Below, in pieces: positions 4,256 through 49,070 of a stretch of DNA of 64,000 bases. Origin of the DNA: Selaginella moellendorffii (Eukaryota > Plantae > Lycopodiophyta). The stretch lies in assembly GCF_000143415.4 (NCBI RefSeq), contig NW_003314281.1, positions 1,527,882 to 1,591,881 of the forward strand. The letters are read 5' to 3'. Within the stretch, counting starts at the first letter, position 1; the number at the start of each line of letters is the position of its first letter. The notes beneath the pieces are model-generated. The model ran no database searches. It was given only the letters and a program-made list of their open reading frames with translations, and was not told the DNA's origin. The position numbers and the translations under genes were made by a program.

Positions 4256-6020
4256 GTTATCGGTAAGTGTTTGATCTTCTAGACTTCCTGTTCTTCTCTT
4301 TTCGCTTCTCACTCTCGGAAACATCGCAGATAAGTTATCTAGAATAGCAAGAAACGCACCCAGTCGAGACCTCTAAGCAAGTTCTCGAGTGGCTTGGGTA
4401 TTCTCTGTGTATCTAGCACACTTTGTCCGGGAAGAACTACCGGTACGCTACATAAATAAATTGGCTCGAGATTTTTTTGAAAGAAGAAAGGATCACTTGC
4501 CTGTAACTTGCGTCTTCCCCAGTGTATAGCCTCGTTGTGTGATTGATGATACAGATCGATCCTTGCAGGACCTTTGATCGCACCTCCACGATCTTCCACC
4601 TGATGAAGTAAATAGAATGTGAAAGACGAGAAGAATGAAAGCTCGCTAGAACCCTTCCCCAGCCATATCCTGGAACAAACATCCTCCACTGTAGCGGACT
4701 CCCGTGGGAGTCCCATGCAAATGCATGGGCATCAAAAAAAAGTATTTTGTGAAGATTATATAACGAAGCTCACGAAAAAAATGTGGGAGTGGGCGCAAAA
4801 CTCTTGTGAGCATGGCAATGGCGTCTTCACAGGCAAGCATAGATCTCTCACATGGCCCTCCCCACATTGTTTTAAGATCTCAACCCCTTGCTTGGCTTCC
4901 CATAGATTTGGTGTGATGACAACAACGTTGGTGCCAGGTAATATGCTATGGAAACACTCCGTGACAACATTGAGTAATACCAGGATGCGACAGTGGAAGG
5001 ATAAGCGGGTGAGGACAAGCTATGGCGATTGTGATGATGACCTGAGTCCTAATCGGTTTGTATCAGCTGCATTTGTTCCATGGTCATGGCGTGGAAATAG
5101 TCTCCAGGGAGCTGGGAGCTGAGCTTTGAAAAATTAAAGAGAGAGAGAGAGAAAATATGAGATACACATCTGGAAGATAAGAACTTTTCATCTCTCTTTC
5201 TCTCTCTCTCTTTCTAATGCCATCTTAAATTCTCTAATAAGCACCCTTTTATTGTTTAAAGGTATTTACAATTTGCTGCTCGCAAGAATTCAGCCCCTGT
5301 TTGCCCCAACTTATCCACTACTGTCTGGGCGGTCTTTATGAAAATCCGAGTGAGCTGTCTCAGCTCCAGCAGCACCAAGCACATAAAAAATGCAACAATT
5401 AGCTTTGAAACCGTGCAGGAATTTGCGAATTCTAGCTCTTTTTGGCTACAGGGATACATTGGGAAAAGGGGGTTGGATTTGCAAACTACCTGATTTACAA
5501 TATCTGTTCTTCCAGAGAGAACTCACCACTCTCATCTTCCTGGACGATAAAAATTTTAGCTGCCGATTCTGGTTCAATTGTGATATACAGTCCTGTAGGA
5601 CTTTGGCCTTGGTTCTCTGAAGCGTAAAGAATAGCAATGGTCGATCTTGGGCGATTTCTTTTCACCTTTAAACTTACAAATTGTGAGCTTTTTGATTGTA
5701 CTATGGCCCTTAGAGTACAAAACACCATGCCGTACTCGTTATCACGGAAGAATAAGATCTTGTCAGTTTTATTGATGATCAGATGTTTGGAAGCAGATGT
5801 TCCCATTGTTATCCTTGCCTCTCTTTCTCTCTCTCTCAATCTTTCTCTCTGGGACCTTGAAACCCTCGTTTTGAGTTCGCTCAAGGATTTTCTTTTAATC
5901 TCAATTCATTGCTGATGTGGGATAGCAATCTCATTGATTGTTCTTCATGCTACAGATTAATTGCAATTTGATGACAATCAATCTGTCACATGAAGAACAA
6001 TAGTAAGCTCCACCGCTTGT
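4095..6020. repeat. Local duplication, copy A (kinase 3' end, spacer, small ORF)
   Basis: 5027-6020 matches 9120-10141; 4095-4684 matches ~10266-10843; 5056-5180 recurs at ~10855-11035. Confidence 0.9.
5495..5806 (-). CDS. 103-aa uncharacterised protein with N-myristoylation-type N-terminus (MGTSASK), copy 1
   Basis: Single-exon ORF from ATG 5806; frame and length identical in the second copy while the flanks carry indels. Confidence 0.55.
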   Translation of the reverse strand: MGTSASKHLIINKTDKILFFRDNEYGMVFCTLRAIVQSKSSQFVSLKVKRNRPRSTIAILYASENQGQSPTGLYITIEPESAAKIFIVQEDESGEFSLEEQIL

Positions 6021-9000
6021 TGTTATCAATGGAGTTCGACATTTTCATAATAACAATGTTTGTATGGAATTGCTTGTTTATAAATGTAATAAAATATTTA
6101 TAAATATAGTTAGATATTTTTTTTCTAGTTACAATACTTATGTTTTCTCCCTTCTCATCATCATTATTCTTTAAAGTGTTATTTTATAATTAGATAATAA
6201 TATTATAAAATAGATTATAAAGTACTTATTTTTAACTTTATCTTTGTTGTAATATAGTTTTAAAGTATTATATTAATATTTTAGAAACTATTAATACTGA
6301 TAAATATAAATTTAAATATAAATAAATTATGTATTTCTTTCTTCATCATAATTAAATATTATATATTTTGAAGTGTTATGCTTATCACCTTAAAACAATT
6401 AAAAATAAATATACTATATAATGACTTACAATTAAATATTTTAATTTCCTCCTATCATTATCAAGCTTTATAACATTTGAAAAGGTACTCATAATGTATA
6501 ATTATAATATATTACAAAACTTTTAAAATATTTATAAAAAGTATTTACTTTATTAAATACTTCTTTTATCATTTTTAAATATATTATCTATTAAAGATAG
6601 GCTTATGATTGAGGATTTTTCACTTAGAGTGTTTGACACAAATTCATCTTTTCTTTTCATTTTTTTATAATTTTATTAATTCATAGAATATCTCCAAGTT
6701 TTATATCCTTGAAGCAAGCTTATATATATACAAAGAGATTAAATGATAAAAAAAGTACATAATAAAGGTAAAAACTTATGATTATTATGAGAATTTTATA
6801 ATATACTTTAAGTACAAATGCAACAATCAATAGATGGATAATATCAAAGTCAAAGACAATAGTATCTTAAAGACTAAATTATTAGTAGATAAAGCTCAAC
6901 ATTAATAAATGGTAAGGGCAGATAGATGTGTTGAATTTGTGGATGTAAGTGAATTTCCAGTTTTTGTATTAAACTCAGACTTCATTTGTCATGTACTCTT
7001 TTATGTCATTTTTTCAAATATTTGATTTTAGTCATTATATGGCATCTTATACTCAAAATCTTTTAAAAATTGTTTCCTTCCCTTCTTTCCTTTTTCTTTT
7101 AGTTAAAATATTAAAACTATTACTTCTAACATTAAAGATATCAATTTTTACTTCCATACCACTTAAGATGAAGTACTTTTTCTTTATTAAAATTTCCACT
7201 ATTATGGAGTTATCTTTAAATTAATAGCACAAAAATTAAATATCTTAAGTATATCAATTATTTTACAAGTTTTCTTTCAATTTTGATATCACCCTAATGC
7301 TTGAATAACCTAAGAGCATTGCAACTTGCAAAATTGTATGACACCCATAATCCAAGATGTAGGCTTCCTTAGGAACTTTCTAAATTATATATTAACCAAC
7401 TCTTAATTATAAAGTTTTGCCAAATTCCTTTCTAGTCATTTTTGAAATGTTAAAAAAAAATTTCTCAAAAAAAAATCATCATTTTTAGTGTTAAGCTGCC
7501 ATAGAACCACTATATATATAAATTTTCTATATCTTCTTTATAAAAAAAGGCATGTAGTCTTGAAATTGTTATTAATCTTGGTCTTTTAAAGGAAGCTAAA
7601 TGCAAATAATGTTTGTTTATGTCCATACAAAATCAAAACCTTGTAATTGGTTTTTTATCAATAACTCTAGAACAACATTTTAACACTAGTAAGTACTTAG
7701 TATAGTTTTATTATAGGTTTTATTACTTTTCCTGATATGTAGATTTGATATGATTTTTGATTAAAAATAATTGTCTGTGCATTCCATTTAGCAGTTACTT
7801 GTTTTTTTTAATAGTAGTGTTATCTAAATTTAATAATCTTATTTATCAAATGGAAGTTTATAATTATAAACATGTTTATAATTTATAAAAATAAAATTAA
7901 TCTTATTGCATTTCAACCATTAAATGGTAGAATAAACTAGAATATACTACAAAGTGTTTAGGAAAGTTTATTAAATATTAACATGTCCATAAATTATAAA
8001 TACTCAATTTATCTAAATGAATAATAACTGTTAGATTATAGAATATCCCAGAATATCCAAGCATATTTTTGATATATCCATTACTATCTATAGTATTGCC
8101 TAATCAAACCAAAAAGTGAAACTGATATATACAATTTTATTTCATAGTTTATTTACTAGTTTAATCTATGGTTTATATAAGAATTTTACTTTATCACTTT
8201 GATTTATAGTTTATTTAGTAGTTGTTTATATACAATTTTATAAAGTTACAATCAAACACTATGAACACTACAAAATTGGGATGAAAAGATTTCATGGTTA
8301 CCACTATCTACTATTTAGTTATGGCAATCCTACTGCTAGCTGGAAAGGTAATAAAAAGAACATTAAATTAGAAGTAATCCCTCCAATGTTGTTGATGCTA
8401 GTGTATTCTAATGGCTCTTATGTGTTCTTCAAGCCTCTAAAGAAAAGCATAACAACATAAAAAAAAAGCAAAGTTACTTTATAATGCCAATCTATAGATA
8501 GATTTAAAAACCAAAAGATCCTATCAACTTAGATCTGGATGAAAATAAAAGTGTTACCTTCTAAGATGGATGGAGCCTTTATGAAAAAACAGAAAGCTAA
8601 CGAATAGAAAAAAATAAAAAAATAAAAAAAACTTTCATGTCTTGCTTCAATTGTCTAGGCACTAATGGACTAGGTGTGTTGGATGGCCATTGCTTGGCCA
8701 TGTGCATAGCAACTTGGCAGTATGGCTGTAGTGTTGCTATTTGCTATGTTATGCAATGGCTTAGGCTTAGATAGACCAAGCTAGGGCATGCCATAGAGCT
8801 GGGCTGAGCTGGGTTGTGGTGTGGAGCTAGTGGCAAGGAATCAATATCTATAGAGCTCAACTAGCACTCAGCTGCAATGGTGTAAAACACATGGTATCCG
8901 ATAGTGATATATCATAGGATAACCATAAAGTAGAATATTAACCCTCTATATGCCACATGCCACATGTTATGTGTCTAAATAATAATTGTGTGGAACCCGA

Positions 9001-13829: not shown

Positions 13830-16800
13830 ATGGCGCCAGACCTCAAGAGCGACTCCTCGGCTCCACAGCCACCGGCGAAACCGGCCAAGGATGCCAAGAA
13901 GAAGAAGGACGAGAAGGAGGATCTGGTACGTGTGCTAGCTCTGCTCATGCGGGATTTGATTTGCCGACATTGGAATTTGCGTTTGCGTCTAGTCGGAGGA
14001 AGATTTGGCGCTCAAGCAGCAGCTGGAACTCTATGTGGAGAGGGCGCAGGACAGCGATCCTGGAGTCCAGAGGCTGGCTCTGGAGAGTATGAGGTACGCG
14101 AGTAGGAGTTTAATCGTTCGTGTTGTGAGGAGCTGTGTGTATGCGCAGGCAAGAGATTCGGAGTGCTACAAGCTCCATGACTTCCGTGCCCAAGCCGCTG
14201 AAATTCCTCCGCCCGCATTATGGGACTTTGAAGGCGTTCTTCCAGAAAATGCCCGAGTCGGAGCTCAAAGTGAGTAGTGCTTTGAGAAATGTGAAGCTCA
14301 CGAATTTTTTCTTTCTCTTCCTTTTCCTGATAGATGTATATGGCTGATATCATCTCGGTTTTGGCACTTACCATGTCGGAAGAAGGAGAAAGGGTATGTT
14401 GAAGCTAATTTTGTTATATCAGGAACACTGAAACACTCTTGCAGGAGAGCTTGCAATATAGATTGCTCGGCTCTAAGGGTGACTTGGGTTCATGGGGCCA
14501 CGAATACGTCAGGTTTGTGACAGTACGCTAGCTGTTTCTTTACCGAGTAAATTGAGCTTGATTACAGAAATTTGGCTGGAGAAATTGGCCTCGAATTCCA
14601 AAAGCGTCGGGTATGTCTTTGTTTATAGTTCTTTTGCTGATTTTATCATGCAGTCGGAGGAAGAGTACATCAGCAGCTTGATGGATTTAGTAAAGCAAAT
14701 TGTACCATTCCACTTGCAGCACAATGCAGAACCTGAAGCTGTAGATCTGCTAATGGAAGTAAGTAAATTTTATTTCTTGAACATGCTTACGAACTTGCAT
14801 GATGTTCGAAGGTTGAAACGCTTGACATTCTACCCAAATTCATGGAGAAAGCCAACTTCAAAAGGACGTGTTCCTATCTCTTAAGCTGTGCTAGGTATGT
14901 TTCTGTACGTCTTCCGCAGTCACTCATCCATTATTGCAGCTACGTACCTGAGCTAGAGGACATATCAGTCTTGGACATCGCTTATCAAATCTATTCCAAA
15001 TTTGAGCAGCATACTGATGCTTTGAGGGTTGCTCTTCGGTTGGGCAACTTGCAGGTTTGCTTCAAGTCATGTGTTAAATATGTGTCTGATGCAAATATAT
15101 TCTGTTAGTACGCTCGGGCTACATTTGCAGCTTGCAAGGATTTATCGGAAAGGAAGCAGCTCTGCTACATCCTTGCCCGACAGGTAATCCTTCTGAGTGA
15201 TCTTCAGTGCTAAAACTGTTGTTCACAGAGTGAAACGGTAGAGCTGGATGACGAAATTCCTATGGAGGATGAGCATCGTGACGTGTTACAAGACATTATG
15301 AACAACACGAAGCTATGTGAAGGATATCTGACTCTCGCACGGGATCTTGATGTGATGGAGCCCAAAGTACCTGAAGATATATACAAGGTACGGGCGTTTC
15401 TTTGACTTTCTCCTCATTCGAGTTGTACCACAGGCTCATTTAATTGATGGAAGAGCGAGTGCCGGAGCTAGTGTTGATTCGGCTAGACAAAACCTTGCAG
15501 CCACTTTCGTCAATGCTTTCGTCAACGCTGGTTTTGGACAGGTGAACATGAACTGATTTTCAGGATGTGCACTAAAATTATTTCTTTCCAGGATCACTTA
15601 ATGACATCTCCTGCTGAGTCTTCTGGATCAACCAGCACTGGTAACTGGCTTTTTAAAAACAAAGAACATGGAAAGGCCAGCGCTACTGCCAGTTTGGTAA
15701 GGCACCTTGCTAAAGAAACCTGTCCACTGTAACTTACCGGCCGTAATCGTTCAGGGTCTTATCACCTTGTGGGATGTTGATGGAGGCCTCCCACAAATTG
15801 ATAAGTATCTATACAGTACCGATAACCATGTTGTCGCGGGAGCTCTCTTGGCTGTTGGAATTATCAATTGTGGAATTCGTAATGACTGCGATCCGGTGAG
15901 CAGTCCTTTCCTTTTAGTTGTGTGTTAACATTTATTTGCATGCAGGCGTATGCTCTTCTATATGACTCAGTAACTAAAGATGATCCTGCGGTACGTATTG
16001 GTGCTATTATGGGTCTTGGCCTAGCATATGCCGGCACACAAAAAGAAGAGGTTCGTTTCTTCTACCAGTTAGGTAGCGCATTGACACGTACTTACAGGTT
16101 CTCGAGCTTCTTACTCCAATCATATCTGACTCAAGGGTTGGAATTGATGTTGCTGGTTTTGCTGCACTATCTCTTGGACTTGTTTATGTTGCATCATGCC
16201 ACGAAGATGCAGCACAAGCCATACTCCTTGCGATGATGGAACGAGACAACGACGATCCTTTGGCCAGGTTCTTGTGTCTGGGATTGGGACTTCTCTACCT
16301 TGGAAAGCAGGTAGTACGCTCTTCTTTGTTTGGGGATGTAAATCGAATTTTTCTGTCAGGACGCTGCTGAGGCCACCTTTGAAGTGGTTAAAACAGTAAA
16401 CGAGAAGATTTCCAACTATTGCCAAGTGACTCTCGAATCTTGTACTTATGCTGGTACTGGAAATGTTTTGAAGGTATGTCTTTTTTATAGTGATACTGCA
16501 GTGGTATAATAATATTTTTGAGCAGGTCCAAAAATTCCTGAGTCAATGCTCTGATCATTTGGACAAAGGCGAGAGTCACCAGGGTGCAGCGGTTCTAGGC
16601 ATTGGACTTGTTGCTATGGCAGAAGAGCTTGGGAGCGATATGGCTTTAAGAGCTCTAGAGCACCTTTTGCAGTATGGCGAGCCAAATATTCGTCGAGCCG
16701 TGCCTTTGGCTCTGGGTCTCTTGTCGATATCGAATCCGAAGGTAAGACTTGATTTTTCTTTAAAAATTGTGCTCATCTATTGGATTATATCAGATCAATG

Positions 16801-17750
16801 TCATGGACACATTGAGCAGGCTGAGCCATGACACAGACTCGGAAGTCGCGATGGTATGAGCTTTACGAGTTCTTCTCCGAATGAAATCGTTATTGTTCTC
16901 TCCTGTTTTTCCCAGGCTGCAACCATTTCTCTTGGACTTATTGGCGCCGGAACAAACAATGCGCGTATTGCGGGAATGCTTCGAAGCTTGTCCAGCTATT
17001 ACTACAAGGATCCCAGCCTTCTGTTCTGCGTAAGTTTGATCTCTCTTGTTTTTCTTTTTTTTCTTCGTTTTCATCTTAGTTTTGTCAATCTCTGTCACAG
17101 GTTCGGATCGCCCAGGGACTTGTACACATGGGAAAGGGACTAATCACTTTAAATCCTTACCATTCTGATCGTTTCTTGCTCTCGACGTAAGCATCGACAC
17201 TTGACTGCTTACACCTCTTTGTTCTTGCTCAATATCTCGCTTGTTTAGGCCTGCCATCGCCGGCATTGTTGCCGTTCTTCATGCGTGCTTGGATATGAAA
17301 GCCATCATCCTAGGGAAGTACCACTACGTTCTCTACTATCTCGTTCTAGCAATGCAGGTAAAATTGCTCATGTCCTTTTTTCTTTGTTCTGGGGGAGGTA
17401 ACGCTGTCTTTCTTCCTTTTCTCCAGCCTAGGATGCTCATGACTGTAGACGAGAACTTAAAGCCACTGCCTGTGCCCGTTCGAGTGGGAATTGCTGTGGA
17501 CACAGTCGGTCAGGCAGGGCGGCCCAAGAGCATAACAGGATTCCAAACGCACACCACTCCAGTTCTTCTTGCGACCGGTGAAAGAGCGGAGCTTGCCACT
17601 GAGAAGTAAGCTCAAAGAGAGATTTCTCTTTTTCTCTCTTGTTCTTCTCTAAGCGTCTGTTCTTCCAGGTACACACCCCTTTCATCTGTGTTGGAGGGAT
17701 TCGTGGTTCTTCGTGAAAATCCAGACTACGTCGAGGACCACCTTAATTGA
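13830..17750 (+). CDS. RPN1: 26S proteasome regulatory subunit RPN1 (PSMD2), multi-exon
   Basis: [75 protein letters not shown], terminal ENPDY. Confidence 0.97.
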
Positions 17751-32717: not shown

Positions 32718-34772
32718 ATGGATTTTGCCGCCGTGGAGCGGCTCATCAGATGCGAACCACTCCCGCGAGCCCGGGACATCGTCCAGTCCGTACAGAGAAA
32801 GAGCCCTACTTCTGGCACATACCTGGCCAATCTCCTGGTCCAGCGGTACGGCCGATGCGGCGACATCGATCAGGCCTTGAGGATCTTCCAGTCGATCGAG
32901 GCCAAGGACTCCTTCTCATGGAATCTGATGCTAGCGGCATATGCCCAGAATGGGAGACTCGAGGAGTCCGAGAGCTTCTTCTCGGCAATGCCACACAAGG
33001 ATCTAGTTTCGTGGACGACGATGCTATCGGCCTACTCAAGCGATGGCAAGCTCGACGATGCGCGGTGGATCTTCGATCAGATGCCACACAGAAGCATCGC
33101 GTCGTGGAACGCGATGCTTACTGCGTATGCCGTGTCGGGGCATCTGGAGGGTGTTAAGTTGTTCTTTGATTCCATGCAGAAGACCAACATGGTTTCGTGG
33201 ATCACGCTTCTCAACGCGTACACGAAGCTGGGATCTTTCAATGAAGCTAGAGATATCTTCAACTCCATGCCCGATCGGAGCCTGGCCGCCTGGAACTCGA
33301 TCCTCACGGCTGCTGCTCACAAAGGGGAATTTGCTGATGCCGAGGATATTTTTCTGAGACTGCTGCCATGCCGGGACATCAGGTCATGGAACTCGATGCT
33401 CGGAGCTGTAGCGAAATCACAAAGTATTGCAAGAACACAGGACTTTTTTCATAGCTCAATGCCGGAGATGAATATAATGTCGTGGACTACAATGCTCGCG
33501 GCATTGGCCAACAATGGGGATTTCGGTAAGGCTAGCGCTTTTCTTAACTCCATGCCCGTCTCAAACATCGTCTCTTGGAACTCCCTTCTTTGCGCTTCCA
33601 CAAAAGCTGGAGACTACGTAGGATCAAGTAGAATATTCGATGCAATGCCAGAGCACCACCTTCCCTCGTGCAATGCGGTACTCGAAGCATATTCCCAGCT
33701 CGGGTATCCTCATCGTGTTAGACTCTTATTTGATTCTATGCCCGAGCGCGATATGGCGACGTGGACAATAGTATTAACGGCATATTCACAGCTACGGCAT
33801 CTTGCCTTGGTAGAAGATGTCTTTAACAATATGCCTTTCCACGACCTTTTTTCGTGGACGGCTATGCTCTCAGCATATTCACTTAGTGGGAATCTTTCAA
33901 AGTGCGAGAAGATGTTTCTCTCCATGAAAAAGGTTGACTTTGTTTGTGTGAATGCTATGGTCACTGCTTATGCCCGAAACGGACATCTTGAAGAGTGCAA
34001 GTCTCTCTTTGATAAAACACCATCATCGAACCTTGTGCTGCAGAATTCAATGCTATCAGCCTTTTGCAAAGCTGGCTATATCAACGATGCCAAAACCTTG
34101 TTTGACTCAATGCCAGAGAGAGACTTGGTTTCCTGGAATTCCATCCTTGATGTGTATTGTGAAAATGGGGATTTGCAGGAAACAAAGTTCTTGTTTGACC
34201 TCATGCCCGAGAAATCAACTGTCTCGTTCAACATCATGTTAGCGGCCTATAGCCAGGGTCAACAGGTGGATTTGGCGAGGATGTTTTTTGAAACAATGCC
34301 AGAATGGGATCTTGTGTCTTGGAGCACAATGCTTGCAATGAACACACACAATGGGCGCTTTTCTGAGACAATCAAGTGTTTTGAATCCATGGCACTTGAA
34401 GCTGTAGATGCAGATCTAGTCTCCTTCACATCAGTTCTCCTGGGTTGCAACCATGCAGGAGATCTCAAAACAGGGCTCTTGATATTTTTATCCATGGGAT
34501 TTGATTATGGTATAGAGAATCCAACTAAGCAGCAGTATGGTTGTGTTATTGACTTGGTGGCAAGAGCTGGGTATTTGGAAGTAGCCGAGAGTTTGATTCT
34601 TAGCATGCCTTTTGTTGCCGAAGTTTCGGATTGGATGTGTTTAATCTCGGCTTGTTGCAACCATAATCAAGGTTTTGAGGTTGGTTGTAGGGCTTACAAT
34701 AAAGCAGCAGCATTGAATACAAAGGCATCTGGGTCATTTGTGTTGATGTCAAATATTTTCTCATTACAATAA
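32718..34772 (+). CDS. PLS-class PPR protein, E-type, no DYW
   Basis: 684-aa repeat ORF ending QYGCVIDLVARAG..WMCLISACCNH..SFVLMSNIF; divergent from the HIBCH-like gene with 107 bp between ATGs. Confidence 0.93.
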   Translation: MDFAAVERLIRCEPLPRARDIVQSVQRKSPTSGTYLANLLVQRYGRCGDIDQALRIFQSIEAKDSFSWNLMLAAYAQNGRLEESESFFSAMPHKDLVSWTTMLSAYSSDGKLDDARWIFDQMPHRSIASWNAMLTAYAVSGHLEGVKLFFDSMQKTNMVSWITLLNAYTKLGSFNEARDIFNSMPDRSLAAWNSILTAAAHKGEFADAEDIFLRLLPCRDIRSWNSMLGAVAKSQSIARTQDFFHSSMPEMNIMSWTTMLAALANNGDFGKASAFLNSMPVSNIVSWNSLLCASTKAGDYVGSSRIFDAMPEHHLPSCNAVLEAYSQLGYPHRVRLLFDSMPERDMATWTIVLTAYSQLRHLALVEDVFNNMPFHDLFSWTAMLSAYSLSGNLSKCEKMFLSMKKVDFVCVNAMVTAYARNGHLEECKSLFDKTPSSNLVLQNSMLSAFCKAGYINDAKTLFDSMPERDLVSWNSILDVYCENGDLQETKFLFDLMPEKSTVSFNIMLAAYSQGQQVDLARMFFETMPEWDLVSWSTMLAMNTHNGRFSETIKCFESMALEAVDADLVSFTSVLLGCNHAGDLKTGLLIFLSMGFDYGIENPTKQQYGCVIDLVARAGYLEVAESLILSMPFVAEVSDWMCLISACCNHNQGFEVGCRAYNKAAALNTKASGSFVLMSNIFSLQ

Positions 34773-38104: not shown

Positions 38105-38681
38105 GAAGATCAAGCACCCAGATCCCAGCCACAATTTCCTCCAAAGTCCCACCTTCAATTGTTTTGTGTCTCCATTGCCCCAAAATCTTGAGCTCAATCT
38201 CACCTCAAATTCTCTCATGAGAAGGATTAATCTTTGCATGTGCTACAGCCAAGAAAATCATAAAAAAGTCACAATGAGATTTTATAATGCTTTGCACTTG
38301 CCAAACTCTATGGATCATAGATTGAATTGAATTATTCAAAAGAAGAGGAAATGACATGGGCGTACATAATACACACAGTGATTTTTTACATAATAATTTT
38401 GTGTGCAATTGAAAAAAAAACCATTTAGATAATAAAATTGTCAGCACATTATTGCAATTTTATGAAAGAACTATCTATGAGAAAATAAAAATATTTCACT
38501 TAGAAATTGTGTGCCAAAACATGTACTTAAATTATGTTTTAGTACCTAATATTAAATTATAGTGGTTAATAAAATAAATCACAACCCTTAAAAATTTGAA
38601 ATCATAAAATTCTGAAAGCCTACCCTAACCTAAAAATATTGTTAAAAGAAAAACATTTCTAAGAATATCTAGTACCATTCT

Positions 38682-40657
38682 TCAAGCTTGTTTCTTGATT
38701 TTGTGAGGACTGGCAACCGTCTCAGCTCGCTGGCAGGCAGCCATGGTTTTGACATGCTCAAACTCATCGCCCTACACAACATGATCCATCAGCATTTCTA
38801 CAGCCTAAGCTACCAAACTTACCTTAATTGCTACGAACACATCATAAAGGCTATCCACCTTTGGTCTTCTGCTTTCAGGAGCTCGGCTTGTTTGGAATTC
38901 ATCGAACCTACAATGCAAAGATCAGATTCCTATACTAAAAGACGCCTGCATTTTTTACTTACATATATAAGTCTTCGTTCTCGTAGTATGCCACAGCTTC
39001 TGGCGATGGAGGGAGTTGTTTGAGGAGTTCCTCATTCTCGTCGACAAATTGGCCGTAAGTGTCCACTGTTTGTTCGATGAAACACATAAATTGATACAAT
39101 CCGTGTAAGATTGATCATTTCATACCTGCATGCATTTCTATTAGCTCTGAGAAATTGTAGGCGACTTTGGGCGAGACGAAAAACATGAAGTTCAGAATCT
39201 GCATTTAGATGACAGATATCGATTATTCTTGCTTGTGAGCCAAAATAAACATACCCAGTAATAAAAGAATGCTGCATGTTGTCCGAAGAATCGATCTCCC
39301 CATAGCAAATCTCCTCCAAGAGATTCCATGATTTTTAGATGGTGCATTTCATTCCATTCCTGGCACACCATCGTAAGTAGAATAGAAAGAGAAACTGAAA
39401 AAATGTACCTCTGCAAAATGGACTTTCCTTACATCCGCACCTACACGCCACCTACAAAAATAGTGAAGAAGATCAAGTCGCCAGCGGAATAACGCAAGCT
39501 CGTGAATACTAACCAGCCAAGAGTTTCGTACAAATGCAGCATAGAAATATATCTGTAAAGTTCGAAGTCAAGGATTCTCGGCCTTCGAAACAAAAGCCTT
39601 TAACTCAAGGATACGAAAAGTAAGGCATTCTTGCTACGGTTTCCAGAAACCAGAAGCGTTGAATTGGCCTGCCCTCAAAGATTACATCTAGCATCTGCAA
39701 TCACGAAATAAGATTAGAAATCAAATGTAATCGTACCAGAGAAAAACTGCGAAGACTACAAGCTCGGAAGCAATGCATACCCAACAAAGAGCGTAATACG
39801 GACCAAGAATCCACCAGGGAGCCTCAACAGGCGGTCGATTGCGCTCCCTCTCCCAGACGGCGTCTCTGTTCAGTGTTAGCTTCGCGAGAGCTTTTCTGAG
39901 ATCCTCTTGCTCCGTGTCAAGCACCTGCATGAAATACAATGAGCTCTAGCAAGCACTCTCACGCTCACTTACCAGGAGCTCTTCTTTCAGCACTGGCAAT
40001 CCATCGTAAAGTTGGAGTATCTTGTCGAATCCTCTGAAAAAGAGAACAAATCCACGTCCCAAGTAAGCAGCAGCAACACCAAGTGGTTCGGAGTCTGAAA
40101 AGGCATCGTTAGAACAACCGGAGACTAAGATTTAGCTACCACCTTCTGAGATTTCAAACTCTCCAAACAGATAGCTTCGTCTCAGCGCCTGGAAGTATAG
40201 AACCAACGTGTGAAGGAGGAGGAAACAATGGACAACGGATGTAAACCTTCCATTCTCGACCAAAGTTCTCGAATGCAAGCCTGAAAAAACTCCCAGGAAC
40301 ACTGGGACCTTGGCGAAGGAACTTTGCCTGGAAGCCATAGTTGAACGCAATTCTCTTTGGCTTGTGCGAGTGCGTGATAGATAGATGCTCCTCGATCGCC
40401 TCCAACCTGAGCTCGCGGCTGGATTGCGCAATGGAAGACGGCGAATCATTCCCAACGCTTCCTTGAGCCCTCACAAGCAGCCATTGAGCCCTATCGTTGC
40501 GGATTTTGGTAGAACCAGGGTAAGCAAGCCGACGGAAACTTACGCGAGCGCTAAAGAAGCTGGAATCGAGGCGCCTTGATCGCCGAGCTGGAGAATGCAA
40601 GAATTTTCGATCGCTGGAGCTTGGATCAGTGCTGGCGGCGCAGCTACACAGCGCCAT
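38682..40657 (-). CDS. PTOX: Plastid terminal oxidase (plastoquinol oxidase), multi-exon
   Basis: Ser/Arg-rich transit peptide from ATG 40657; spliced [65 protein letters not shown] carry the diiron ligands. Confidence 0.92.
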
Positions 40658-40883
40658 TCTCGCACAAACAAAGACGAGAAGAATAACGAATACTCTAGAG
40701 CTCTGATACCTTAGAACCACTAGGAACACGACGGGTGGCTTCATCTCAGCCGTTGATTCTAGGGCTCTAGAGAATATCTTTTTCTTTGGCACGAAGGAAG
40801 CGCTTTTTACATCAACGGCTGGGTCTTCTTCAAAACCACTTGGTCGTATTCCGTGAATTTCCATTGATCGATCCATCGCGAGA
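40658..40883. promoter_or_regulatory. Putative bidirectional promoter / 5' UTR region shared by PTOX and AOX
   Basis: Only 226 bp between the two divergent ATGs; regulatory function is inferred. Confidence 0.55.
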
Positions 40884-42076
40884 ATGCAAAGCGCCAGAGG
40901 TGGAATCCTTAGGCTGGTAGTGCGGCGCATCTCTACTCCATCCGCGGCGGCGCCGCTCGCTTCATCGAAGATCGCCGCTGTTCTCCCAGGCAGGGTTTTC
41001 CAGTTGTTCGATCTTGGAGGTGGCGCTAGGGATTACGGATCTGTCGCAGCAGCGGTGAAAAGCGAGGAGGCCGAGGCCGATCTCCAATGCCAGGGGCAGC
41101 CGCCGGAAAAGAAAGATGAGAAGAAGGACGTGGTGATCTCCGACTACTGGGGAATCCTCCCCAAGAAGCTCGTCGACGAGCAAGGCAAGCCATGGCCGTG
41201 GAATTCCTTCAGGGTAAGCGCGATCGCATTCGTCTTTTTGGAAATTTCTTGTTTCTCACCGAGATTTTCGGCTTCTCTCGCAGCCGACCGAAGCGTATGC
41301 TCCAGATTTGACCATCGATCTCAAGAAGCACCACAATCCCGTGTCGGTGGTCGATAAGCTTGCGTACTGGACTGTTAAGACGCTGCGTATTCCAACAGAT
41401 ATCTTCTTCCAGGTATGCTCGCATGGCGAATTTTTTTTTTCTCTTAGTTGATGGTTTGATCTTTGAATCCAAAGAGGAGGTATGGATGCCGGGCTATGAT
41501 GCTGGAGACTGTGGCTGGAGTTCCCGGGATGGTGGGTGGCATGCTCTTGCACTGCAAATCCTTGCGCCGATTCGAGCACAGTGGGGGATGGATCAAAGCT
41601 CTGCTCGAGGAGGCCGAGAACGAGCGGATGCATCTCATGACTTTCATGGAGGTTGTCCAGCCCAAGTGGTACGAGCGGGCGTTGGTGTTTACGGTCCAGG
41701 GGGTGTTCTTCAATGCCTACTTCCTGTGCTACGTGCTTTTCCCTCGATTGGCACACCGGATAGTGGGCTATCTGGAAGAAGAAGCGATCCATTCCTACAC
41801 TGAGTACCTCAAGGAGATCGACAAGGGAACCATCCCCAACGCTCCCGCTCCCGCCATCGCGATTGACTACTGGCGCCTTCCAAAGGATGCAAAGATGCGT
41901 GACGTTGTGGAAGTTGTCCGAGCTGATGAGGCGCACCACCGAGACGTAAATCACTTTGCAGCTGTAAGTTTCTCCTCGTTGCTTTTTTCTTGGTAACGTG
42001 AAGTCTCTTTGTGCAGGATATTCACAAGGCTGGCAAGGAACTGCGCTCGGCCGCTGCTCCTTTGAGCTACCACTGA
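40884..42076 (+). CDS. AOX: Mitochondrial alternative oxidase, 4 exons
   Basis: Presequence, [57 protein letters not shown]-terminal APLSYH. Confidence 0.97.
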
Positions 42077-42832
42077 TAAGATCCCTGAGCAAGCATGCAG
42101 AAGGAATACGAAGAGTTTACAATAAAAAAGAGGAGGTAAATACATACATGCTGCCTTTCTAACAGGTGGCAAATCTATGTCTTACTTATAGCAGCAGCTT
42201 TCTCTTTCGTTAAACTACGTGAAAGCCAAGAACAGTCGATTCGCGTCGAGGGTCAAAACAAAATAAATCCCTCTGCGACGTCGACAAATCTTTGCATTCA
42301 ATAAGAAGGCTTTTCATGTGGCAAGAAAAACCAGAGGTCACGAAGATTCAAGAGCTCGCGACTTGAGTGGCCTGATCACAGTCTGGTCACAACGGAAGGG
42401 TGTCCGTGATTCATCTGAAAGCTCAGTTTTTGTTCGGCTCGGCCACAGTGGTGGCTCTTGTGATCTTGTCCTGGCGCTCTTAAATTAGATTGATCGTCGA
42501 GGGGGGCTCAAGAACAGGATCAAACAGAGCGTCACTCTGCGACTTAAGTGAAATCTCAAGGGAGGTTTTTGGCCGGAAAAGAGGTAGTACCAGACTATAC
42601 AGTGGGGTGGTGGTACTCGAAAGATTCTCGCTTTTTCTCTCTCGCATTTTGGCTGGGTTCTTCCACTAGCGAGAAAGAGCTTAGAAGAAAGTCTGTGGCG
42701 TTTTGTGGCGCGCATCTCGAAGAGAAGAGCAGAGCTAAACCAGAAACATACATTGTTCTTCATAGCTAGCTCGAGCGAAGAACAGGTTTTCGATCGAGTC
42801 CCTGCGACTGCGAGAAGTTAACTCTCGGATCC

Positions 42833-44164
42833 ATGGGCAGATTTCCTCTCCGCGGTGCTCTTGTTCTTGGGCTTTGGCTGCTCTTCCTCTCCATCACCGC
42901 TCAATGCCAAGCTCCAGCGTCATTTGTTTTTGGGGACTCGCTGGTGGATGGTGGCAACAACAACTATATCTTTTCGCTGTCCAAGGCCGACCAGCCGGCT
43001 AATGGCGTCGACTTTCCCGGCGGACGGCCCACTGGGCGATTCTGCAATGGAAGAACCATCCCGGACATCATCGGTACCGGGAAAAAATGGATTTTTTCTG
43101 CCTCTTTCTGATTGATTCGTGTGTTTGCCAGGCGAGAGTTTTGGAATTCCATACGCTCCACCGTATCTAGCACCCACAACGCACGGCGCAGCGATCTTAA
43201 GGGGCGTGAACTATGCGTCCGGTGGTGGAGGAATCGTGGACGAGACCGGACGGATCTTCGTGAGTGTTTTCAAGTTTTTATTCCTCCCTCACTTATTTCA
43301 ATGCTCTTGTGGTCTCAGATTGGGAGATTGTCGCTGTCAAAGCAACTTCTCTACTTCCAAAACACCACGCGCGAGCTCAAATCCATGCTCGGCGAGGACG
43401 CTGCCCGCCAGTACCTCGCAAAATCCATTTTTTCCGTCACCATCGGCGCCAATGACTACCTCAACAATTATCTCTTGCCCGTTCCTCTCACCGGGGACTC
43501 TTTCCTCACGCCGCGCGCCTTCCAGGACAAGCTCATCACGAACTTCCGGCAGCAACTCACAGTTAAGTCCATGCAAAGTTCTCGTGATCATCTAAAAGTT
43601 GCTGCTTTCCAGACGCTTTACAACTCGGGTGCTCGCAAGATCATTGTCGCGGGAGTTGGACCCATCGGCTGCATCCCATATCAGCTCACGCTCAATCTCC
43701 GGAGGGATGGGAGTTGCGTTTCGAGTGCCAACAAGCTTGCACTGAACTACAACACGGCCCTGAGAGATCTCATCCTGGAACTCAACTCCAAACTCCCCGG
43801 ATCGATGTTCTCCTACGCAAACGCTTACGACGTTGTCTGGGATATCATCACCAACAAGAAAAACTACGGTAAATTCTCATTCTTTTCTCGATTCATTCCA
43901 TAGTTTTTCTCATTCGTTTCTTGATTGATCTTGTTTAAAGGCTTCGAGACGAGCGATCTAGCTTGCTGCGGGATTGGAGGGCCGTACAAGGGGGTTCTTC
44001 CCTGTGGCCCAAACGTGCCCGTGTGCAACGAGAGATCCAAATTCTTCTTCTGGGATCCGTACCACCCCAGCGATGCCGCCAATGCGATTGTGGCCAAGCG
44101 CTTCGTCGATGGCGACGAGCGAGACATTTTCCCGCGCAACGTGAGGCAGCTCATTGAAATGTGA
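42833..44164 (+). CDS. GDSL esterase/lipase, 5 exons, secreted
   Basis: Signal peptide, FVFGDSLVDGGNNNY, GVNYASGG, IGANDY, GPIGCIP, FWDPYHPS. Confidence 0.96.
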
Positions 44165-44358
44165 TTGATTGATCGATCCATCCATTCCATTTTTTTCCAT
44201 ATCTCCACTCACTGATCCTTCAATGCAATCCAGCTCCTCCCATTTATTTATTCCTTCAAAGCTCTTTTTCTTCTCTGTTTCAGGAGTAAAATTTAAAGTT
44301 TCGTTTAGCGCCGCTCGACGTCGTGTGTTCGAATCTAGGGTTTAAGGTTTTGTGCGCG

Positions 44359-45802
44359 ATGGCGATGGCGGAGCTCGATTCTGGCGCTGCCGTCACGTCC
44401 TGGAACTACAGCGGTGAAAGAATGGCTGTGGGGTTCACCGATGGCGGCGCCGAGGTGTGGAGCAAGGGATTTGGGAATGGATCGCCTGCATTGTCGTTGG
44501 ATTTCAAATGGAAGGTGAGTGCGCTTCTTTCGATGCTCTACGTAGGATTTCTTGCTTGTACGAGATGGAAATCTTTCCTTTTCTTTAGTTTCTAGTGTTG
44601 CTCGTCGGGAAGAAATTTTTTCCAGGATACTTCTTCACAGATACGCGTGTCTCTAGGCTCATGAAGGTTCCTCTATCGTGAAACTTTGCTGGGGACCGAT
44701 GGAGTTCGGCGACATTGTTGCTTCTTGCTCTAAAGATGGTTCGGTTTGCGTCTGGGAAGAAATCAATGGTACGACCTTTTCTTTGCCTCGAGCGCAGCAT
44801 TCTGACAATAGTTCCTTGTTTTTTCCTTATCTTTTCTGAAGAGAATGGCAAGCTCAAGTGGAGGCAGTGTGCTCAGCTAGCTGAAAACAGCTACTGTCTG
44901 GATCTAAAGTTTGGAAATTGTCTCGGCGGCTTGAAACTGGTACGTAAACTATTGGAAGTCCTTTTAGTTTTCTTTTCTGATTAGTTTTGATACAGGTTAC
45001 AGCTTGTGCTGATGGTTATGCCAGGATTTACGAAACCTCGGACTGCATTGATCTTTCAAAGTGGCAGCTTCAGGTAGGCCAAGTTCTTGATTTTTCTTTC
45101 TTTTCTTTTCTCTCTAAGTTTCGGATAAAATACAGGCGGTGGTTTCGAACGCGACAGATGTGACTGAGAAGATTGGGAAGTGCTCCTGCTCTGGAGCTTC
45201 CATCTCATGGAAGCCTCCGGCTGGTTCTATCCAGCAGCCACTTTTCGCACTTGGCTACTCCACAGACGTCTCAGCATTCTCCACAACGAAGGTATAACAC
45301 TGCAAGATAGTTCTCAAGCTTTGGTACTTTCACAGATCTGGGAATTCGCTGAAGAGCATAGACGCTGGTATCCCATTGCCGAGCTCTCAAATGCGGACGA
45401 CAGCGTTGGAGTAAGCTCCATATCGTGGGCTCCAAATCTCGGAAGGTAACTAGCTACAAGCTTTCTATCCTTGTCATTTCTGATGTACGTCCGCTCCAGG
45501 CCGAATGAGTTGATAGCAGTGGCTTCCGGAAGCACTGTCTCAATCTGGGACTTGGAAATCGGTGGAAAGCAGGGGGTTTCCGTGCAGAGAATCGCAGAGC
45601 TAGAGCATAGCGCAGAGGTGAGCATCCAAAGCTTTAAAAAAGTGTTTTTTTTCCAAGAAAAATCTATCATTTTTAGGTGTGGCAAATCGATTGGGACATG
45701 AGCGGCATGACATTGGCATCGTCTTCCTCGGATGGAACCGTGAGGCTGTGGCAAGCTGGTTTAGATGGAGCGTGGAGGCAGCAAGCTTCACTAAGAGCTT
45801 GA
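44359..45802 (+). CDS. SEH1: WD40 nucleoporin SEH1
   Basis: SWNYSGER, WGPMEFGDIVASCSKDGSVCVWEE, LDLKFG, SWAPNLGRPNELIAVA, VWQIDWDMSGMTLASS. Confidence 0.88.
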
Positions 45803-45987
45803 TAAGGCTCGTCCTCGGACAAGATTCTTGAACCAACGGCCAGGATGAGACGTGTATTCCGTTCCATAATTCACGGGCAATGTGGGTCGTTGGATCCTCT
45901 CATTTGTCGGCCTGACGCCTATTATGAAGTGAGAGCAAAGCAAGCCCTTGGCCTGGTCGGGGAGAGACGGCGGAGGCGACGACGGCA

Positions 45988-47469
45988 ATGGTGAGTGGAG
46001 TGTGTCTCGAATCGAGTTTCTAGGGTTTATGATCTCGTTTTGCTCTTGTCTAGGGGGACGATCGCAGGCGCAGCAGGTAAATGTTTGCTCTGACGGCCTT
46101 TAGGTGTGCTCATTGCTGCGATTTCCAGATATTCGCAGTCCCCATCGCCGAGGCGAGGTCCATCGCGGAGCCCTCCGCCGCTAAAATCACCTCTCAAGTA
46201 TGTTGCTGTTTTTGGTGGAGATTTCGAGCTCAAAGAGTCGGTTTTTCCAGGGAGGATCCTGACAATCCGGGAAATAACCTCTATGTCACTGGGCTCTCGA
46301 CGCGGGTTGCGGAAAAGCAGCTCTTGGAGCATCTCTCGCGAGAGGGGAAGGTATTCCTCCTTAAAGTTTGGGTTTCTTCTTTGCTGTTCTTGGCTTAAAA
46401 CCTTGTTCTACAGGTCCTGGAGTGTCGGATCGTGGTGGATCCGAGGACCAAGGAGTCTAGAGGGTTTGGATTCGTGACAATGGCCAGTACGGAGGATGCG
46501 GAGCGCTGCATCAACTATATGAATCGCTCCACGCTCGAGGGCCGTATAATCACGATAGAGAAGGTAAGTATCCTCTCTAAGTCTTCCTATACAAGTTTCT
46601 TCTTTTTGTTTTTTCGATTCTTTGCTACGCATGGAGTGCTGCAGCTAGAGCAAACGATGCTAATCTGGTTGCTGGTCATCCAGATTTTTCAGTTTTTTAC
46701 TTCTCGGGCGGCTCTTTTTCAAGCAGCCACTTTGACTTCAGACAAATGAGCGAGCTGTGCGCTGGGCTCTGCTTCATCAGTCTTTGCCTTCTCCAGAAAA
46801 ACATCAAGCATCAATCTCTCCTGATCCAACCAGTCTGCTTCAAACACCAAAAAAAAAGTCTGCTCCAAATCTCAATTCAGAAGCCCCACCTTAGCAGCAT
46901 TCCCAGTTGCGAGCTGTGCGAACTTTGATGAGATGCGGTCAGTGCAGCAGTTATCAAAAATCCGAGCGTTAGAAACCAGTGACCCTCCCTTTCAAATCAT
47001 GCTCCACTGGAAGTCTTTGAGGTTCTTTTCTCTGACTTGAGTTTTTTGCATTACCTACAGGAAGCGCTTTGCCATCAGCTTTTACATTTTCCATTTGGTA
47101 CTGATTGCATTCTTCGATGCAGGCTAGGCGCAAGAGACCACGAACTCCTACACCTGGAGAATACCTGGGTGTCCGAGGCAAGTTTCTCGTCATTTTCTTT
47201 TCAGGAAAGAAGGATTTTGTTCTAATGTTTCTTCTGATACAGCTCCTCCAAGATCTCGGCCACCGGGTTACGGTCCACGACATCGCGAGAGAGACCGAGA
47301 CAGGGACTACAGGGACTACTCCCGTAGATCACCCCGCTACTCTCCATACAGGGGTGATAGCCGCGACAGATCTCCACACGGTCGGAGCTACCGCAGGGAG
47401 CGATCCCGTTCGCCTTACTACTACCGCAGGGAACGCTCTCGCTCGCCTTACCACATGTACCGACGCTGA
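45988..47469 (+). CDS. SR45a: SR45a / Tra2-like RS-RRM-RS splicing factor
   Basis: ATG directly followed by an intron, NPGNNLYVTGLSTRV, ESRGFGFVTM, KARRKRPRTPTPGEYLG, RS tail; last intron is GC-AG (47178-47242). Confidence 0.9.
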
Positions 47470-47654
47470 CCACCACAAGGTTTGCAGTGACATTCTCTAT
47501 TTCCATTCAAAATCCAACTGACTGGCGCTCTGGAACAGGCTTCTCTTCATTTACCTGGACACTGCTACTCTCATCCCACACTCTCAAGTTTGTACTCCAA
47601 AGAAAAAGGACATTTTTACATTACCAAATGGTGGTGGTGGTCGAGTTTTTCTCC

Positions 47655-48524
47655 TCAAGGTGGTGCTGGAAGTGCCGCTGTTTGGTTGCTACTAACTGGT
47701 GGTGGCACTGAAGCTTTGTCCGGGACAGTGGCAGCCGAGGCCTCCGCTTGTTGCTGCTTGAGCTTGTATCGCGGGACGAAACCTCGCTTGGAGTAAGGCG
47801 TGGTTTTTACGCACTCGAAGTAGGCCGCCGCGAACTGGGTGATCTCGCAGGATTCACGCGAGTAATTGAAGAGCTTCTTGGGTTTCACCTGAATCGGCGG
47901 AAGAACACACGAAGAGAGTGAAAAGGGATGGATCCAGATCTTTCGTACCAGAGGTTGCGAGCACCAGCCATACTCTTGCGACGCCGTCATGGGGACTTCG
48001 TACTTCTCCGGTGGTGGCATGTCGAGGTCCTGGATTGGGAAGCACGCGCCGAGAAACTTTTGCGCCTCCTCAAATTCCTGTTTGGTCACTGCAGTCTCGT
48101 ATGGTAAACGTTTCTCGAGGAAGCCAGCGATGGAAGATACCTTTCCTCGACGACGTTACTTGGGTGGGCTTCTTGGTGAGCACTTCGGCTGTTTCAAAGT
48201 GAAATATTTTGCCAAGCAAGGATCAGACGGATGGAAAAGAGGAAAAAAATGCATTTTTTTGCTTGTTTTGGGCAGTTTTTTTCGGCGTTGTGAGAATGTT
48301 GGAAGCGAATGAACGAGGCGTGCAAACGAACCTGTGAGTGGATTCAGTCGGTACTCGGCAGCTTGCACCTCGACGGCCTCGAGCTTCGAATTCATGCTTT
48401 TGTAGAGATTGTCGAGAGCTACCATGTCGTCCACGACTGGGAATCTTTGCGGGCGGTGCTGCTGCCCGCGGCCTTTAGCTGGGGACGAGGAGGGGGAGGA
48501 ATGCTGCTGCTTGGAGGAAGCCAT
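47655..48524 (-). CDS. CFAP144/FAM183-like flagellar protein, ~4 exons
   Basis: Spliced YRLNPLTAEVLTKKP..PPEKYEVPMTASQEYGW..ESCEITQFAAAY matches the FAM183 motif pattern. Confidence 0.7.
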
Positions 48525-48699
48525 GGGAGCAATCGATTGGATGATGATGCACATTCTTTTCCCCTTTTCCCCGATCCGAGTTTTTAGGGCTCCTCCTGGT
48601 TTAACCGTCCGAGGTGGAGCGGGAATATGCCATTTTGGTTTGGCGGGATAAGATTTTCGAAACTTTTTATTAGGCGAGAATCATGCACCGTCTCTAAGG

Positions 48700-49070
48700 A
48701 CAGACATATCGACGAAGCCCAATAAGTCTTCCACGCCATGATCCTGCAGAACCAGCACGCCAAGCTCGTCTTAGACACTATGGAGAGGAGAAACTCCTCG
48801 ATGCTAACGCTCTGGCCCCCTGGAGAGCTTCTTCTTGAGGCTGACCATCTTTGCACTCCAGATTATATGCCCAGGATTTTTTCTTTAAAAAGCCTGGAGA
48901 CTCACAGCAAGGGCCAATGTCAGCTGCTTTGCGTTGGATTTCCACCATAGCAACGACTTGGAAAGAGGGAGCTAGATTATGATCTTTGGTAAAAGCTGTC
49001 TCAAATAAGCAAATTTAAGCCTGCTCGCGAACTCAAATGCCTGACATCGCATCGGGTTCATCTGGACTTG
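48700..49070 (+). pseudogene. Heavily deleted copy of the PPR gene at 51344
   Basis: catatcgacgaagccca..aagtcttccacgccatg, gccaagctcg..gagaaactcctcg and ttggaaagaggg match 52337-52371, 52442-52483 and ~52934 in order. Confidence 0.85.

Follow-up and report, generated by a model that had tools for sequence, protein, structure and literature searches.

Genes for a mitochondrial-type AOX and a predicted alga-type PTOX stand head to head in Selaginella moellendorffii

Results

Two AOX-superfamily genes in divergent orientation

The window analysed here is a stretch of 64,000 nucleotides of the Selaginella moellendorffii genome (RefSeq assembly GCF_000143415.4, contig NW_003314281.1), in which two genes of the alternative oxidase (AOX) superfamily are divergently arranged, an AOX gene on the + strand and a plastid terminal oxidase (PTOX) gene on the − strand. 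This layout, proposed in the initial annotation from the sequence alone, was confirmed by the open reading frames (ORFs), by splice joints in RNA contigs and by the second haplotype. Window positions 28682–50876 are 100% identical to a 22,195-bp stretch of scaffold GL377585.1 of S. moellendorffii GCA_000143415.2, and the other haplotype is scaffold GL377627.1, with 98% identity over window positions 38661–48866. The pair is found on both scaffolds, which were assembled independently, and a misassembly is therefore excluded. In the window haplotype RefSeq annotates the AOX of 335 amino acids (aa), and the coding sequence (CDS) ranges of AOX and PTOX abut there. The features discussed below, with the evidence for each, are the following:

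40884–42076, + strand: CDS of the mitochondrial-type AOX, 335 aa (ORF and splice reading, RNA joints, Pfam family PF01786, RefSeq)
38682–40657, − strand: body of the predicted alga-type PTOX, in the 446-aa, 12-exon model of the initial annotation (model, RNA joints, identity to RefSeq proteins)
40658–40883, no strand: 226-bp spacer between the two ATG codons of the initial annotation, shared or overlapping promoter region (sequence, RNA contig ends)
40491–40543, − strand: alternatively spliced 53-nt intron in the region coding for the transit peptide (GT..AG RNA joint)
40837–40876, − strand: coding exon at the 5' end of PTOX in the RefSeq model for the window haplotype, with start codon 40876–40874 (exact mapping of XP_002973024.2)
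40710–40836, − strand: intron of 127 nt in PTOX as modelled by RefSeq (deduced from the mapping of XP_002973024.2; GT..AG ends)
40747–40821, no strand: perfect 11-nt inverted repeat, candidate shared cis-element (repeat search)
40247–40360, − strand: coding sequence of the conserved motif in the N-terminal extension of PTOX (word search and exhaustive HMMER search)

The + strand gene is a plant mitochondrial-type AOX

The AOX gene has four exons (40884–41213, 41284–41412, 41475–41963 and 42017–42076), which run from the ATG at 40884 to the end at 42076 and encode 335 aa. Exon 3 alone matched the Pfam AOX family PF01786 at 1.8e-76 (257 bits; cut-off 22.7) and showed 80–87% identity to many plant proteins named ubiquinol oxidase 1a or 2, mitochondrial. 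The mature protein was 68–79% identical to named angiosperm AOX1a and AOX2 proteins but 23–25% identical to PTOX proteins, and AOX matched the trypanosome AOX crystal structures at ~5e-47. All six iron ligands are kept (LETVA, NERMH, LEEEA and DEAHH, aligned to Arabidopsis AOX2 and Liriodendron AOX1a). The + strand gene is thus a plant mitochondrial-type alternative oxidase, which resembles plant mitochondrial AOX1 and AOX2 (PF01786; Trypanosoma brucei AOX structure 3VV9) in its 4-exon layout, its ligand motifs and the second regulatory cysteine, CysII, which is kept (RRYGCRAM). It differs from the angiosperm AOX1 and AOX2 sequences at the N-terminal regulatory position CysI, where residues ~105–110 (window 41196–41213, + strand) contain a Ser in WNSF and angiosperms have the Cys of WNCF. 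The protein therefore lacks the N-terminal regulatory cysteine; since CysI defines regulation and not family, its membership of the AOX family stands. AOX isoforms of the Ser type exist, and WNSF predicts neither classical disulfide inactivation nor pyruvate activation. The N-terminus is rich in Arg and devoid of acidic residues, and the product is probably imported into mitochondria.

The − strand gene is a predicted alga-type PTOX

The 446-aa PTOX model comprises 12 exons (40657–40247, 40188–40143, 40094–39973, 39924–39781, 39694–39615, 39552–39514, 39451–39409, 39359–39255, 39198–39126, 39065–38963, 38907–38823 and 38771–38682). Taken singly, the exons (24–48 aa) gave no Pfam match even at E=10, and the family assignment rests on the RefSeq proteins XP_002984492.2 and XP_002973024.2, both of which match PF01786 at ~2e-22 (1.9e-22 for the one that maps 100% to the window). 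Identity of the model to XP_002984492.2, the protein of the other haplotype, is 98.7%; it is 75% to the Psilotum and Diphasiastrum sequences, 60–62% to those of Marchantia (60%), Riccia and Closterium, 51–54% to the named PTOX proteins of Chlamydomonas (Q8S308, 51%), Raphidocelis and Nannochloropsis, and 23–27% to AOX. All six iron ligands are kept here as well (LETVA, NEMHH, SELIE and DEFEH), and a PTOX-specific insertion of ~20 residues before the last helix aligns with the PTOX proteins of Chlamydomonas, Marchantia and Psilotum, while AOX sequences have a gap at this place.

Exon 1 encodes a motif of the N-terminal extension that is common to Closterium, Riccia, Psilotum, Adiantum and moss sequences. 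The exhaustive HMMER search returned 17 representatives, among them PF01786 proteins of full length from Closterium, Riccia and Psilotum. Six of the motif's positions do not vary among 35 PTOX sequences of the green lineage, and neither a Pfam family nor a solved structure corresponds to the motif. In the AlphaFold model of PTOX (predicted local distance difference test, pLDDT, 74.6) residues 1–98 are disordered, two long helices (124–145 and 156–181) come next and a bundle resembling that of AOX follows; among solved folds, trypanosome AOX is the nearest (probability 1.00, target TM-score 0.62). Judged by its sequence, the − strand gene is an alga-type plastid terminal oxidase. It is like MpPTOXb of Marchantia and PTOX1/2 of Chlamydomonas in its diiron ligands, its ~20-residue insertion and its long extension, and unlike the IMMUTANS-type PTOX of angiosperms it has an extra N-terminal extension of ~150 residues. 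PMC8155901, citing Messant et al. 2021, describes for non-angiosperms a PTOX of algal type, the N-terminal extension of which is longer; a role in membrane anchoring is suggested for this extension in the literature. From orthology we infer that the Selaginella protein is plastid-localised and active as a plastoquinol oxidase.

Closterium strains have several paralogues of alga-type PTOX, and a single 580-kb contig holds two of them, which points to a local expansion in this alga.

The two genes are not recent duplicates

AOX and PTOX share ~25% identity over the diiron core, have 3 and 11–13 introns, respectively, and are each 60–87% identical to orthologues in other plants. Low mutual identity, different introns and closer relatives elsewhere together show that the adjacency does not stem from a recent tandem duplication, in line with the initial annotation.

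Both genes are transcribed from closely spaced 5' ends

The RNA evidence consists of assembled contigs of four runs (X1, X4, X9 and X10) from four studies, and because the contigs are spliced they derive from RNA. Every intron of AOX (3) and of PTOX (11) was seen as a GT..AG joint across the four runs, and both genes were present in the contigs of all four studies. A contig of 1380 nt spans 40653 to 38586 and joins PTOX exon 1 to the catalytic exons, which makes exon 1 part of the PTOX gene. AOX contigs rich in other-haplotype alleles were considered as a sign of allelic imbalance; this was rejected, since the X1 contig combines both haplotypes in a mosaic, which is the expected result of bubble-popping by the assembler.

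On the PTOX side the contigs end at 40653–40658, and one of them extends with other-haplotype bases to 40663–40665, where sequencing adapter follows, suggesting a cDNA end at this place. On the AOX side contigs begin at 40778, 40818 and 40854. The untranscribed gap between the assembled transcript ends is therefore at most ~115 bp, an upper bound taken from contig ends and not from mapped start sites, since the heterozygous single-nucleotide polymorphisms (SNPs) at 40659, 40662 and 40665 can also end contigs. Judged by these contig ends the two genes are transcribed divergently with 5' ends less than 1 kb apart, as in a bidirectional gene pair. With transcript ends at most ~115 bp apart or overlapping, AOX and PTOX must share or overlap promoter DNA.

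The 5' end of PTOX differs between the haplotypes

The 53-nt joint at 40491–40543 (GT..AG) is removed in contigs of X1, X4 and X9 and retained in contigs of X10, X4 and X9. Contigs spliced at this joint carry the window allele at SNP 40482, and every contig covering 40521 carries the allele of the other haplotype; splicing of this cryptic intron in the transit-peptide region of PTOX is apparently allele-specific. At 40521 the window has CTTAC, a motif that resembles a branch point and lies 30 nt upstream of the acceptor, and the non-splicing haplotype has CTTGC (A to G), a variant that may cause the difference in splicing. Removal of the 53 nt shifts the frame of the ORF starting at 40657, which then stops after 52 codons, and the first ATG of the spliced mRNA to open the PTOX frame is that of Met 243. 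As a consequence, the window allele gives an N-terminally odd PTOX protein or none. One PTOX allele thus appears to yield the normal transit-peptide form and the window allele to lose it. The initial annotation, in which both genes are intact and PTOX starts at ATG 40657 across a 226-bp spacer from AOX, holds for the other haplotype (XP_002984492.2, 446 aa, with the 53 nt retained); owing to the 53-nt splice it does not clearly hold for the window haplotype.

The RefSeq PTOX protein of the window haplotype, XP_002973024.2 (459 aa), maps to the window at 100% with a start at 40876 and introns at 40710–40836 and 40491–40543. On this model the start codons of AOX and PTOX lie 7 bp apart, the exon 40837–40876 is antisense to the AOX 5' untranslated region, and the intron 40710–40836 would span the region in which AOX transcripts begin. 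The predicted 127-nt intron 40710–40836 was not among the RNA joints listed, a list from which one joint is missing. In the other haplotype the codon at 40846–40844, within the upstream exon, is TGA, and exon 40837–40876 is therefore not conserved coding sequence; it has the look of an annotation rescue, not of a conserved exon. The N-terminus of the 446-aa protein is rich in Ser and Arg and resembles a transit peptide, and that of the 459-aa protein does not. In the window haplotype full-length PTOX would then depend on the predicted upstream start at 40876.

The broken ORF from 40657 in the window-haplotype PTOX mRNA is the one observation that would fit an artefact of assembly or annotation, or one of the two genes being a pseudogene. 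Such an explanation is largely refuted, and we give it a very low probability: the same arrangement stands on two independently assembled scaffolds, spliced transcripts were found for both genes, neither protein has lost any of its six iron ligands, and the other PTOX allele retains the full ORF.

The spacer is variable and contains an inverted repeat

With 10 haplotype differences in 226 bp, the spacer 40658–40883 is the most variable segment of a block that differs by ~2% overall. It contains the inverted repeat CAGCCGTTGAT / ATCAACGGCTG, the perfect 11-nt arms of which (40747–40757 and 40811–40821) each have a CCGTTG/CAACGG core and are identical in the other haplotype. The mitochondrial-dysfunction motif of angiosperms, CTTGNNNNNCAMG, does not occur in the spacer, and its count in the window is at chance level.

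A second, imperfect inverted repeat of 26 nt lies at 40679–40704 and 40761–40786. Both start codons stand in the same context, GCGAGAATG, which forms a 9-nt inverted repeat (40655–40663 and 40878–40886).

AOX beside PTOX was found in S. moellendorffii only

The flanks upstream of orthologous, N-extended PTOX genes (0.8–10 kb) were compared by tblastn with the AOX model. The loci were those of Marchantia polymorpha (two assemblies), Ceratodon purpureus, Diphasiastrum complanatum and Closterium, three moss-like metagenome contigs, one ENA plant contig and two Logan plant contigs, and Selaginella was represented by S. moellendorffii alone. No AOX was found within these flanks in any of the liverwort, moss, lycophyte, zygnematophyte or plant contigs compared, and AOX lay beside PTOX only in the two S. 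moellendorffii haplotypes. Among these loci the arrangement is not kept from species to species, as it would be in a conserved gene pair. Synteny in bryophytes and streptophyte algae, among other plants, had been named in the initial annotation as a check of the linkage, and the outcome spoke against it; given its absence from the compared lineages, the pairing is not an ancient conserved module. In a search for congeners with AOX exon 3, the best match was 87% in contigs of ~1.4 kb, none of them recognisably Selaginella. For the PTOX locus of Adiantum, a record without DNA, no neighbour is shown within 10 kb.

In mosses the divergent upstream neighbour of PTOX is a conserved ORF of 498–503 aa without a Pfam match. 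It lies at ~5022–6518 in locus L002 (among loci L002–L004) and at 7083–8594 in locus L009, and two moss loci have an SH3-domain gene downstream. This microsynteny is conserved in mosses and differs from the Selaginella arrangement.

Tight divergent pairs are ordinary in the neighbourhood

The annotated 22-kb locus of the other haplotype comprises nine pairs of neighbouring genes, and the two pairs that are divergent have 226 and 102 bp between their CDSs. The second pair, a 684-aa gene and an enoyl-CoA hydratase (ECH) gene separated by 102 bp, lies within 8 kb of AOX/PTOX. Two such pairs among nine make tight spacing in itself ordinary, and the caveat in the initial annotation that divergent pairs are common here and chance is possible was borne out. 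The 684-aa ORF (window 32718–34772, + strand; positions 15570–17624 of locus L005) is intronless, has no Pfam match, and is annotated on the other haplotype and absent from the gene list of the window haplotype.

This local baseline is one of the points in favour of AOX and PTOX as accidental neighbours with separate or interfering promoters, including an antisense overlap if PTOX starts beyond 40876. Two others are the RefSeq model of the window haplotype, which starts PTOX inside the AOX 5' region, and the AOX/PTOX ratio of contig depth, which varied from ~1 to ~5 among the four runs, depth being a poor measure. Fully independent promoters are difficult to fit into the little DNA left between the transcript ends, and the predicted upstream PTOX exon carries a stop in the other haplotype; we regard this explanation as doubtful.

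Discussion

Our preferred reading, to which we assign a probability of roughly 55%, is that AOX and PTOX form a real, transcribed and lineage-specific juxtaposition of ancient paralogues, brought about by rearrangement, without a selected overflow module. The two paralogues would have been brought together by rearrangement in the Selaginella lineage, in a genome of very high gene density with short head-to-head gaps as a routine feature. The transcription units start at most ~115 bp apart, may overlap and must use the same promoter DNA, and some transcriptional coupling is likely, as is usual for plant bidirectional pairs. The Selaginella pair is like the head-to-head bidirectional pairs of plants in its divergent orientation and in having 5' contig ends far less than 1 kb apart; it differs from them in that the partners are ancient paralogues serving two organelles and that the pairing is not conserved outside the lineage.

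Several points weigh against this reading. Among 1000 dinucleotide-shuffled versions of the spacer, 4 contained an inverted repeat as long as the 11-nt one, which could act as an element common to both genes. For a genome as large as that of Diphasiastrum, 10-kb flanks are short and a looser linkage may exist there, and the genus Selaginella entered the synteny comparison with a single species. Moreover, AOX and PTOX are unlikely as chance neighbours, with an a priori probability below 1% (roughly ~2 x nAOX x nPTOX / 22,000 genes), a figure that applies to a pairing noticed post hoc among thousands of windows scanned.

These considerations bear on the idea that the pair is a selected co-regulatory module, in which one bidirectional promoter, perhaps via CCGTTG/CAACGG, would induce both oxidases under excess reductant. 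In its favour are the transcript ends at most ~115 bp apart, the presence of both genes in the RNA contigs of all four studies, the unusual 11-nt inverted repeat and the low a priori chance of adjacency of the two families. The absence of any described example also counts on this side: in line with the initial annotation, neither an AOX–PTOX adjacency nor the locus identifiers were found in any paper by the literature search. Set against it are the absence of the pairing from every other lineage compared, the variability of the spacer, which is highest exactly there between the haplotypes (10/226 bp against ~2% in the block), and the tolerance of one haplotype for a disrupted PTOX 5' end. On balance we consider such a module unlikely, and nothing indicates that a 'two-organelle overflow' module has been selected and conserved. 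It is quite improbable, in our estimate, that one compact bidirectional region of Selaginella, perhaps through the CCGTTG/CAACGG pairs, co-induces the mitochondrial and plastid quinol:oxygen 'safety valves'.

The juxtaposition of ancient paralogues preferred above amounts, on the available evidence, to two previously annotated genes that are neighbours in one lineage, a new instance of a known arrangement. The haplotype difference in PTOX 5' splicing matters for users of the RefSeq models and for PTOX studies in S. moellendorffii. If co-induction were true, the locus would be a natural case of cis-linked control of overflow respiration in two organelles, and selection on the pairing, if real, would make it a simple natural system for studying how one promoter coordinates the electron overflow of chloroplast and mitochondrion.

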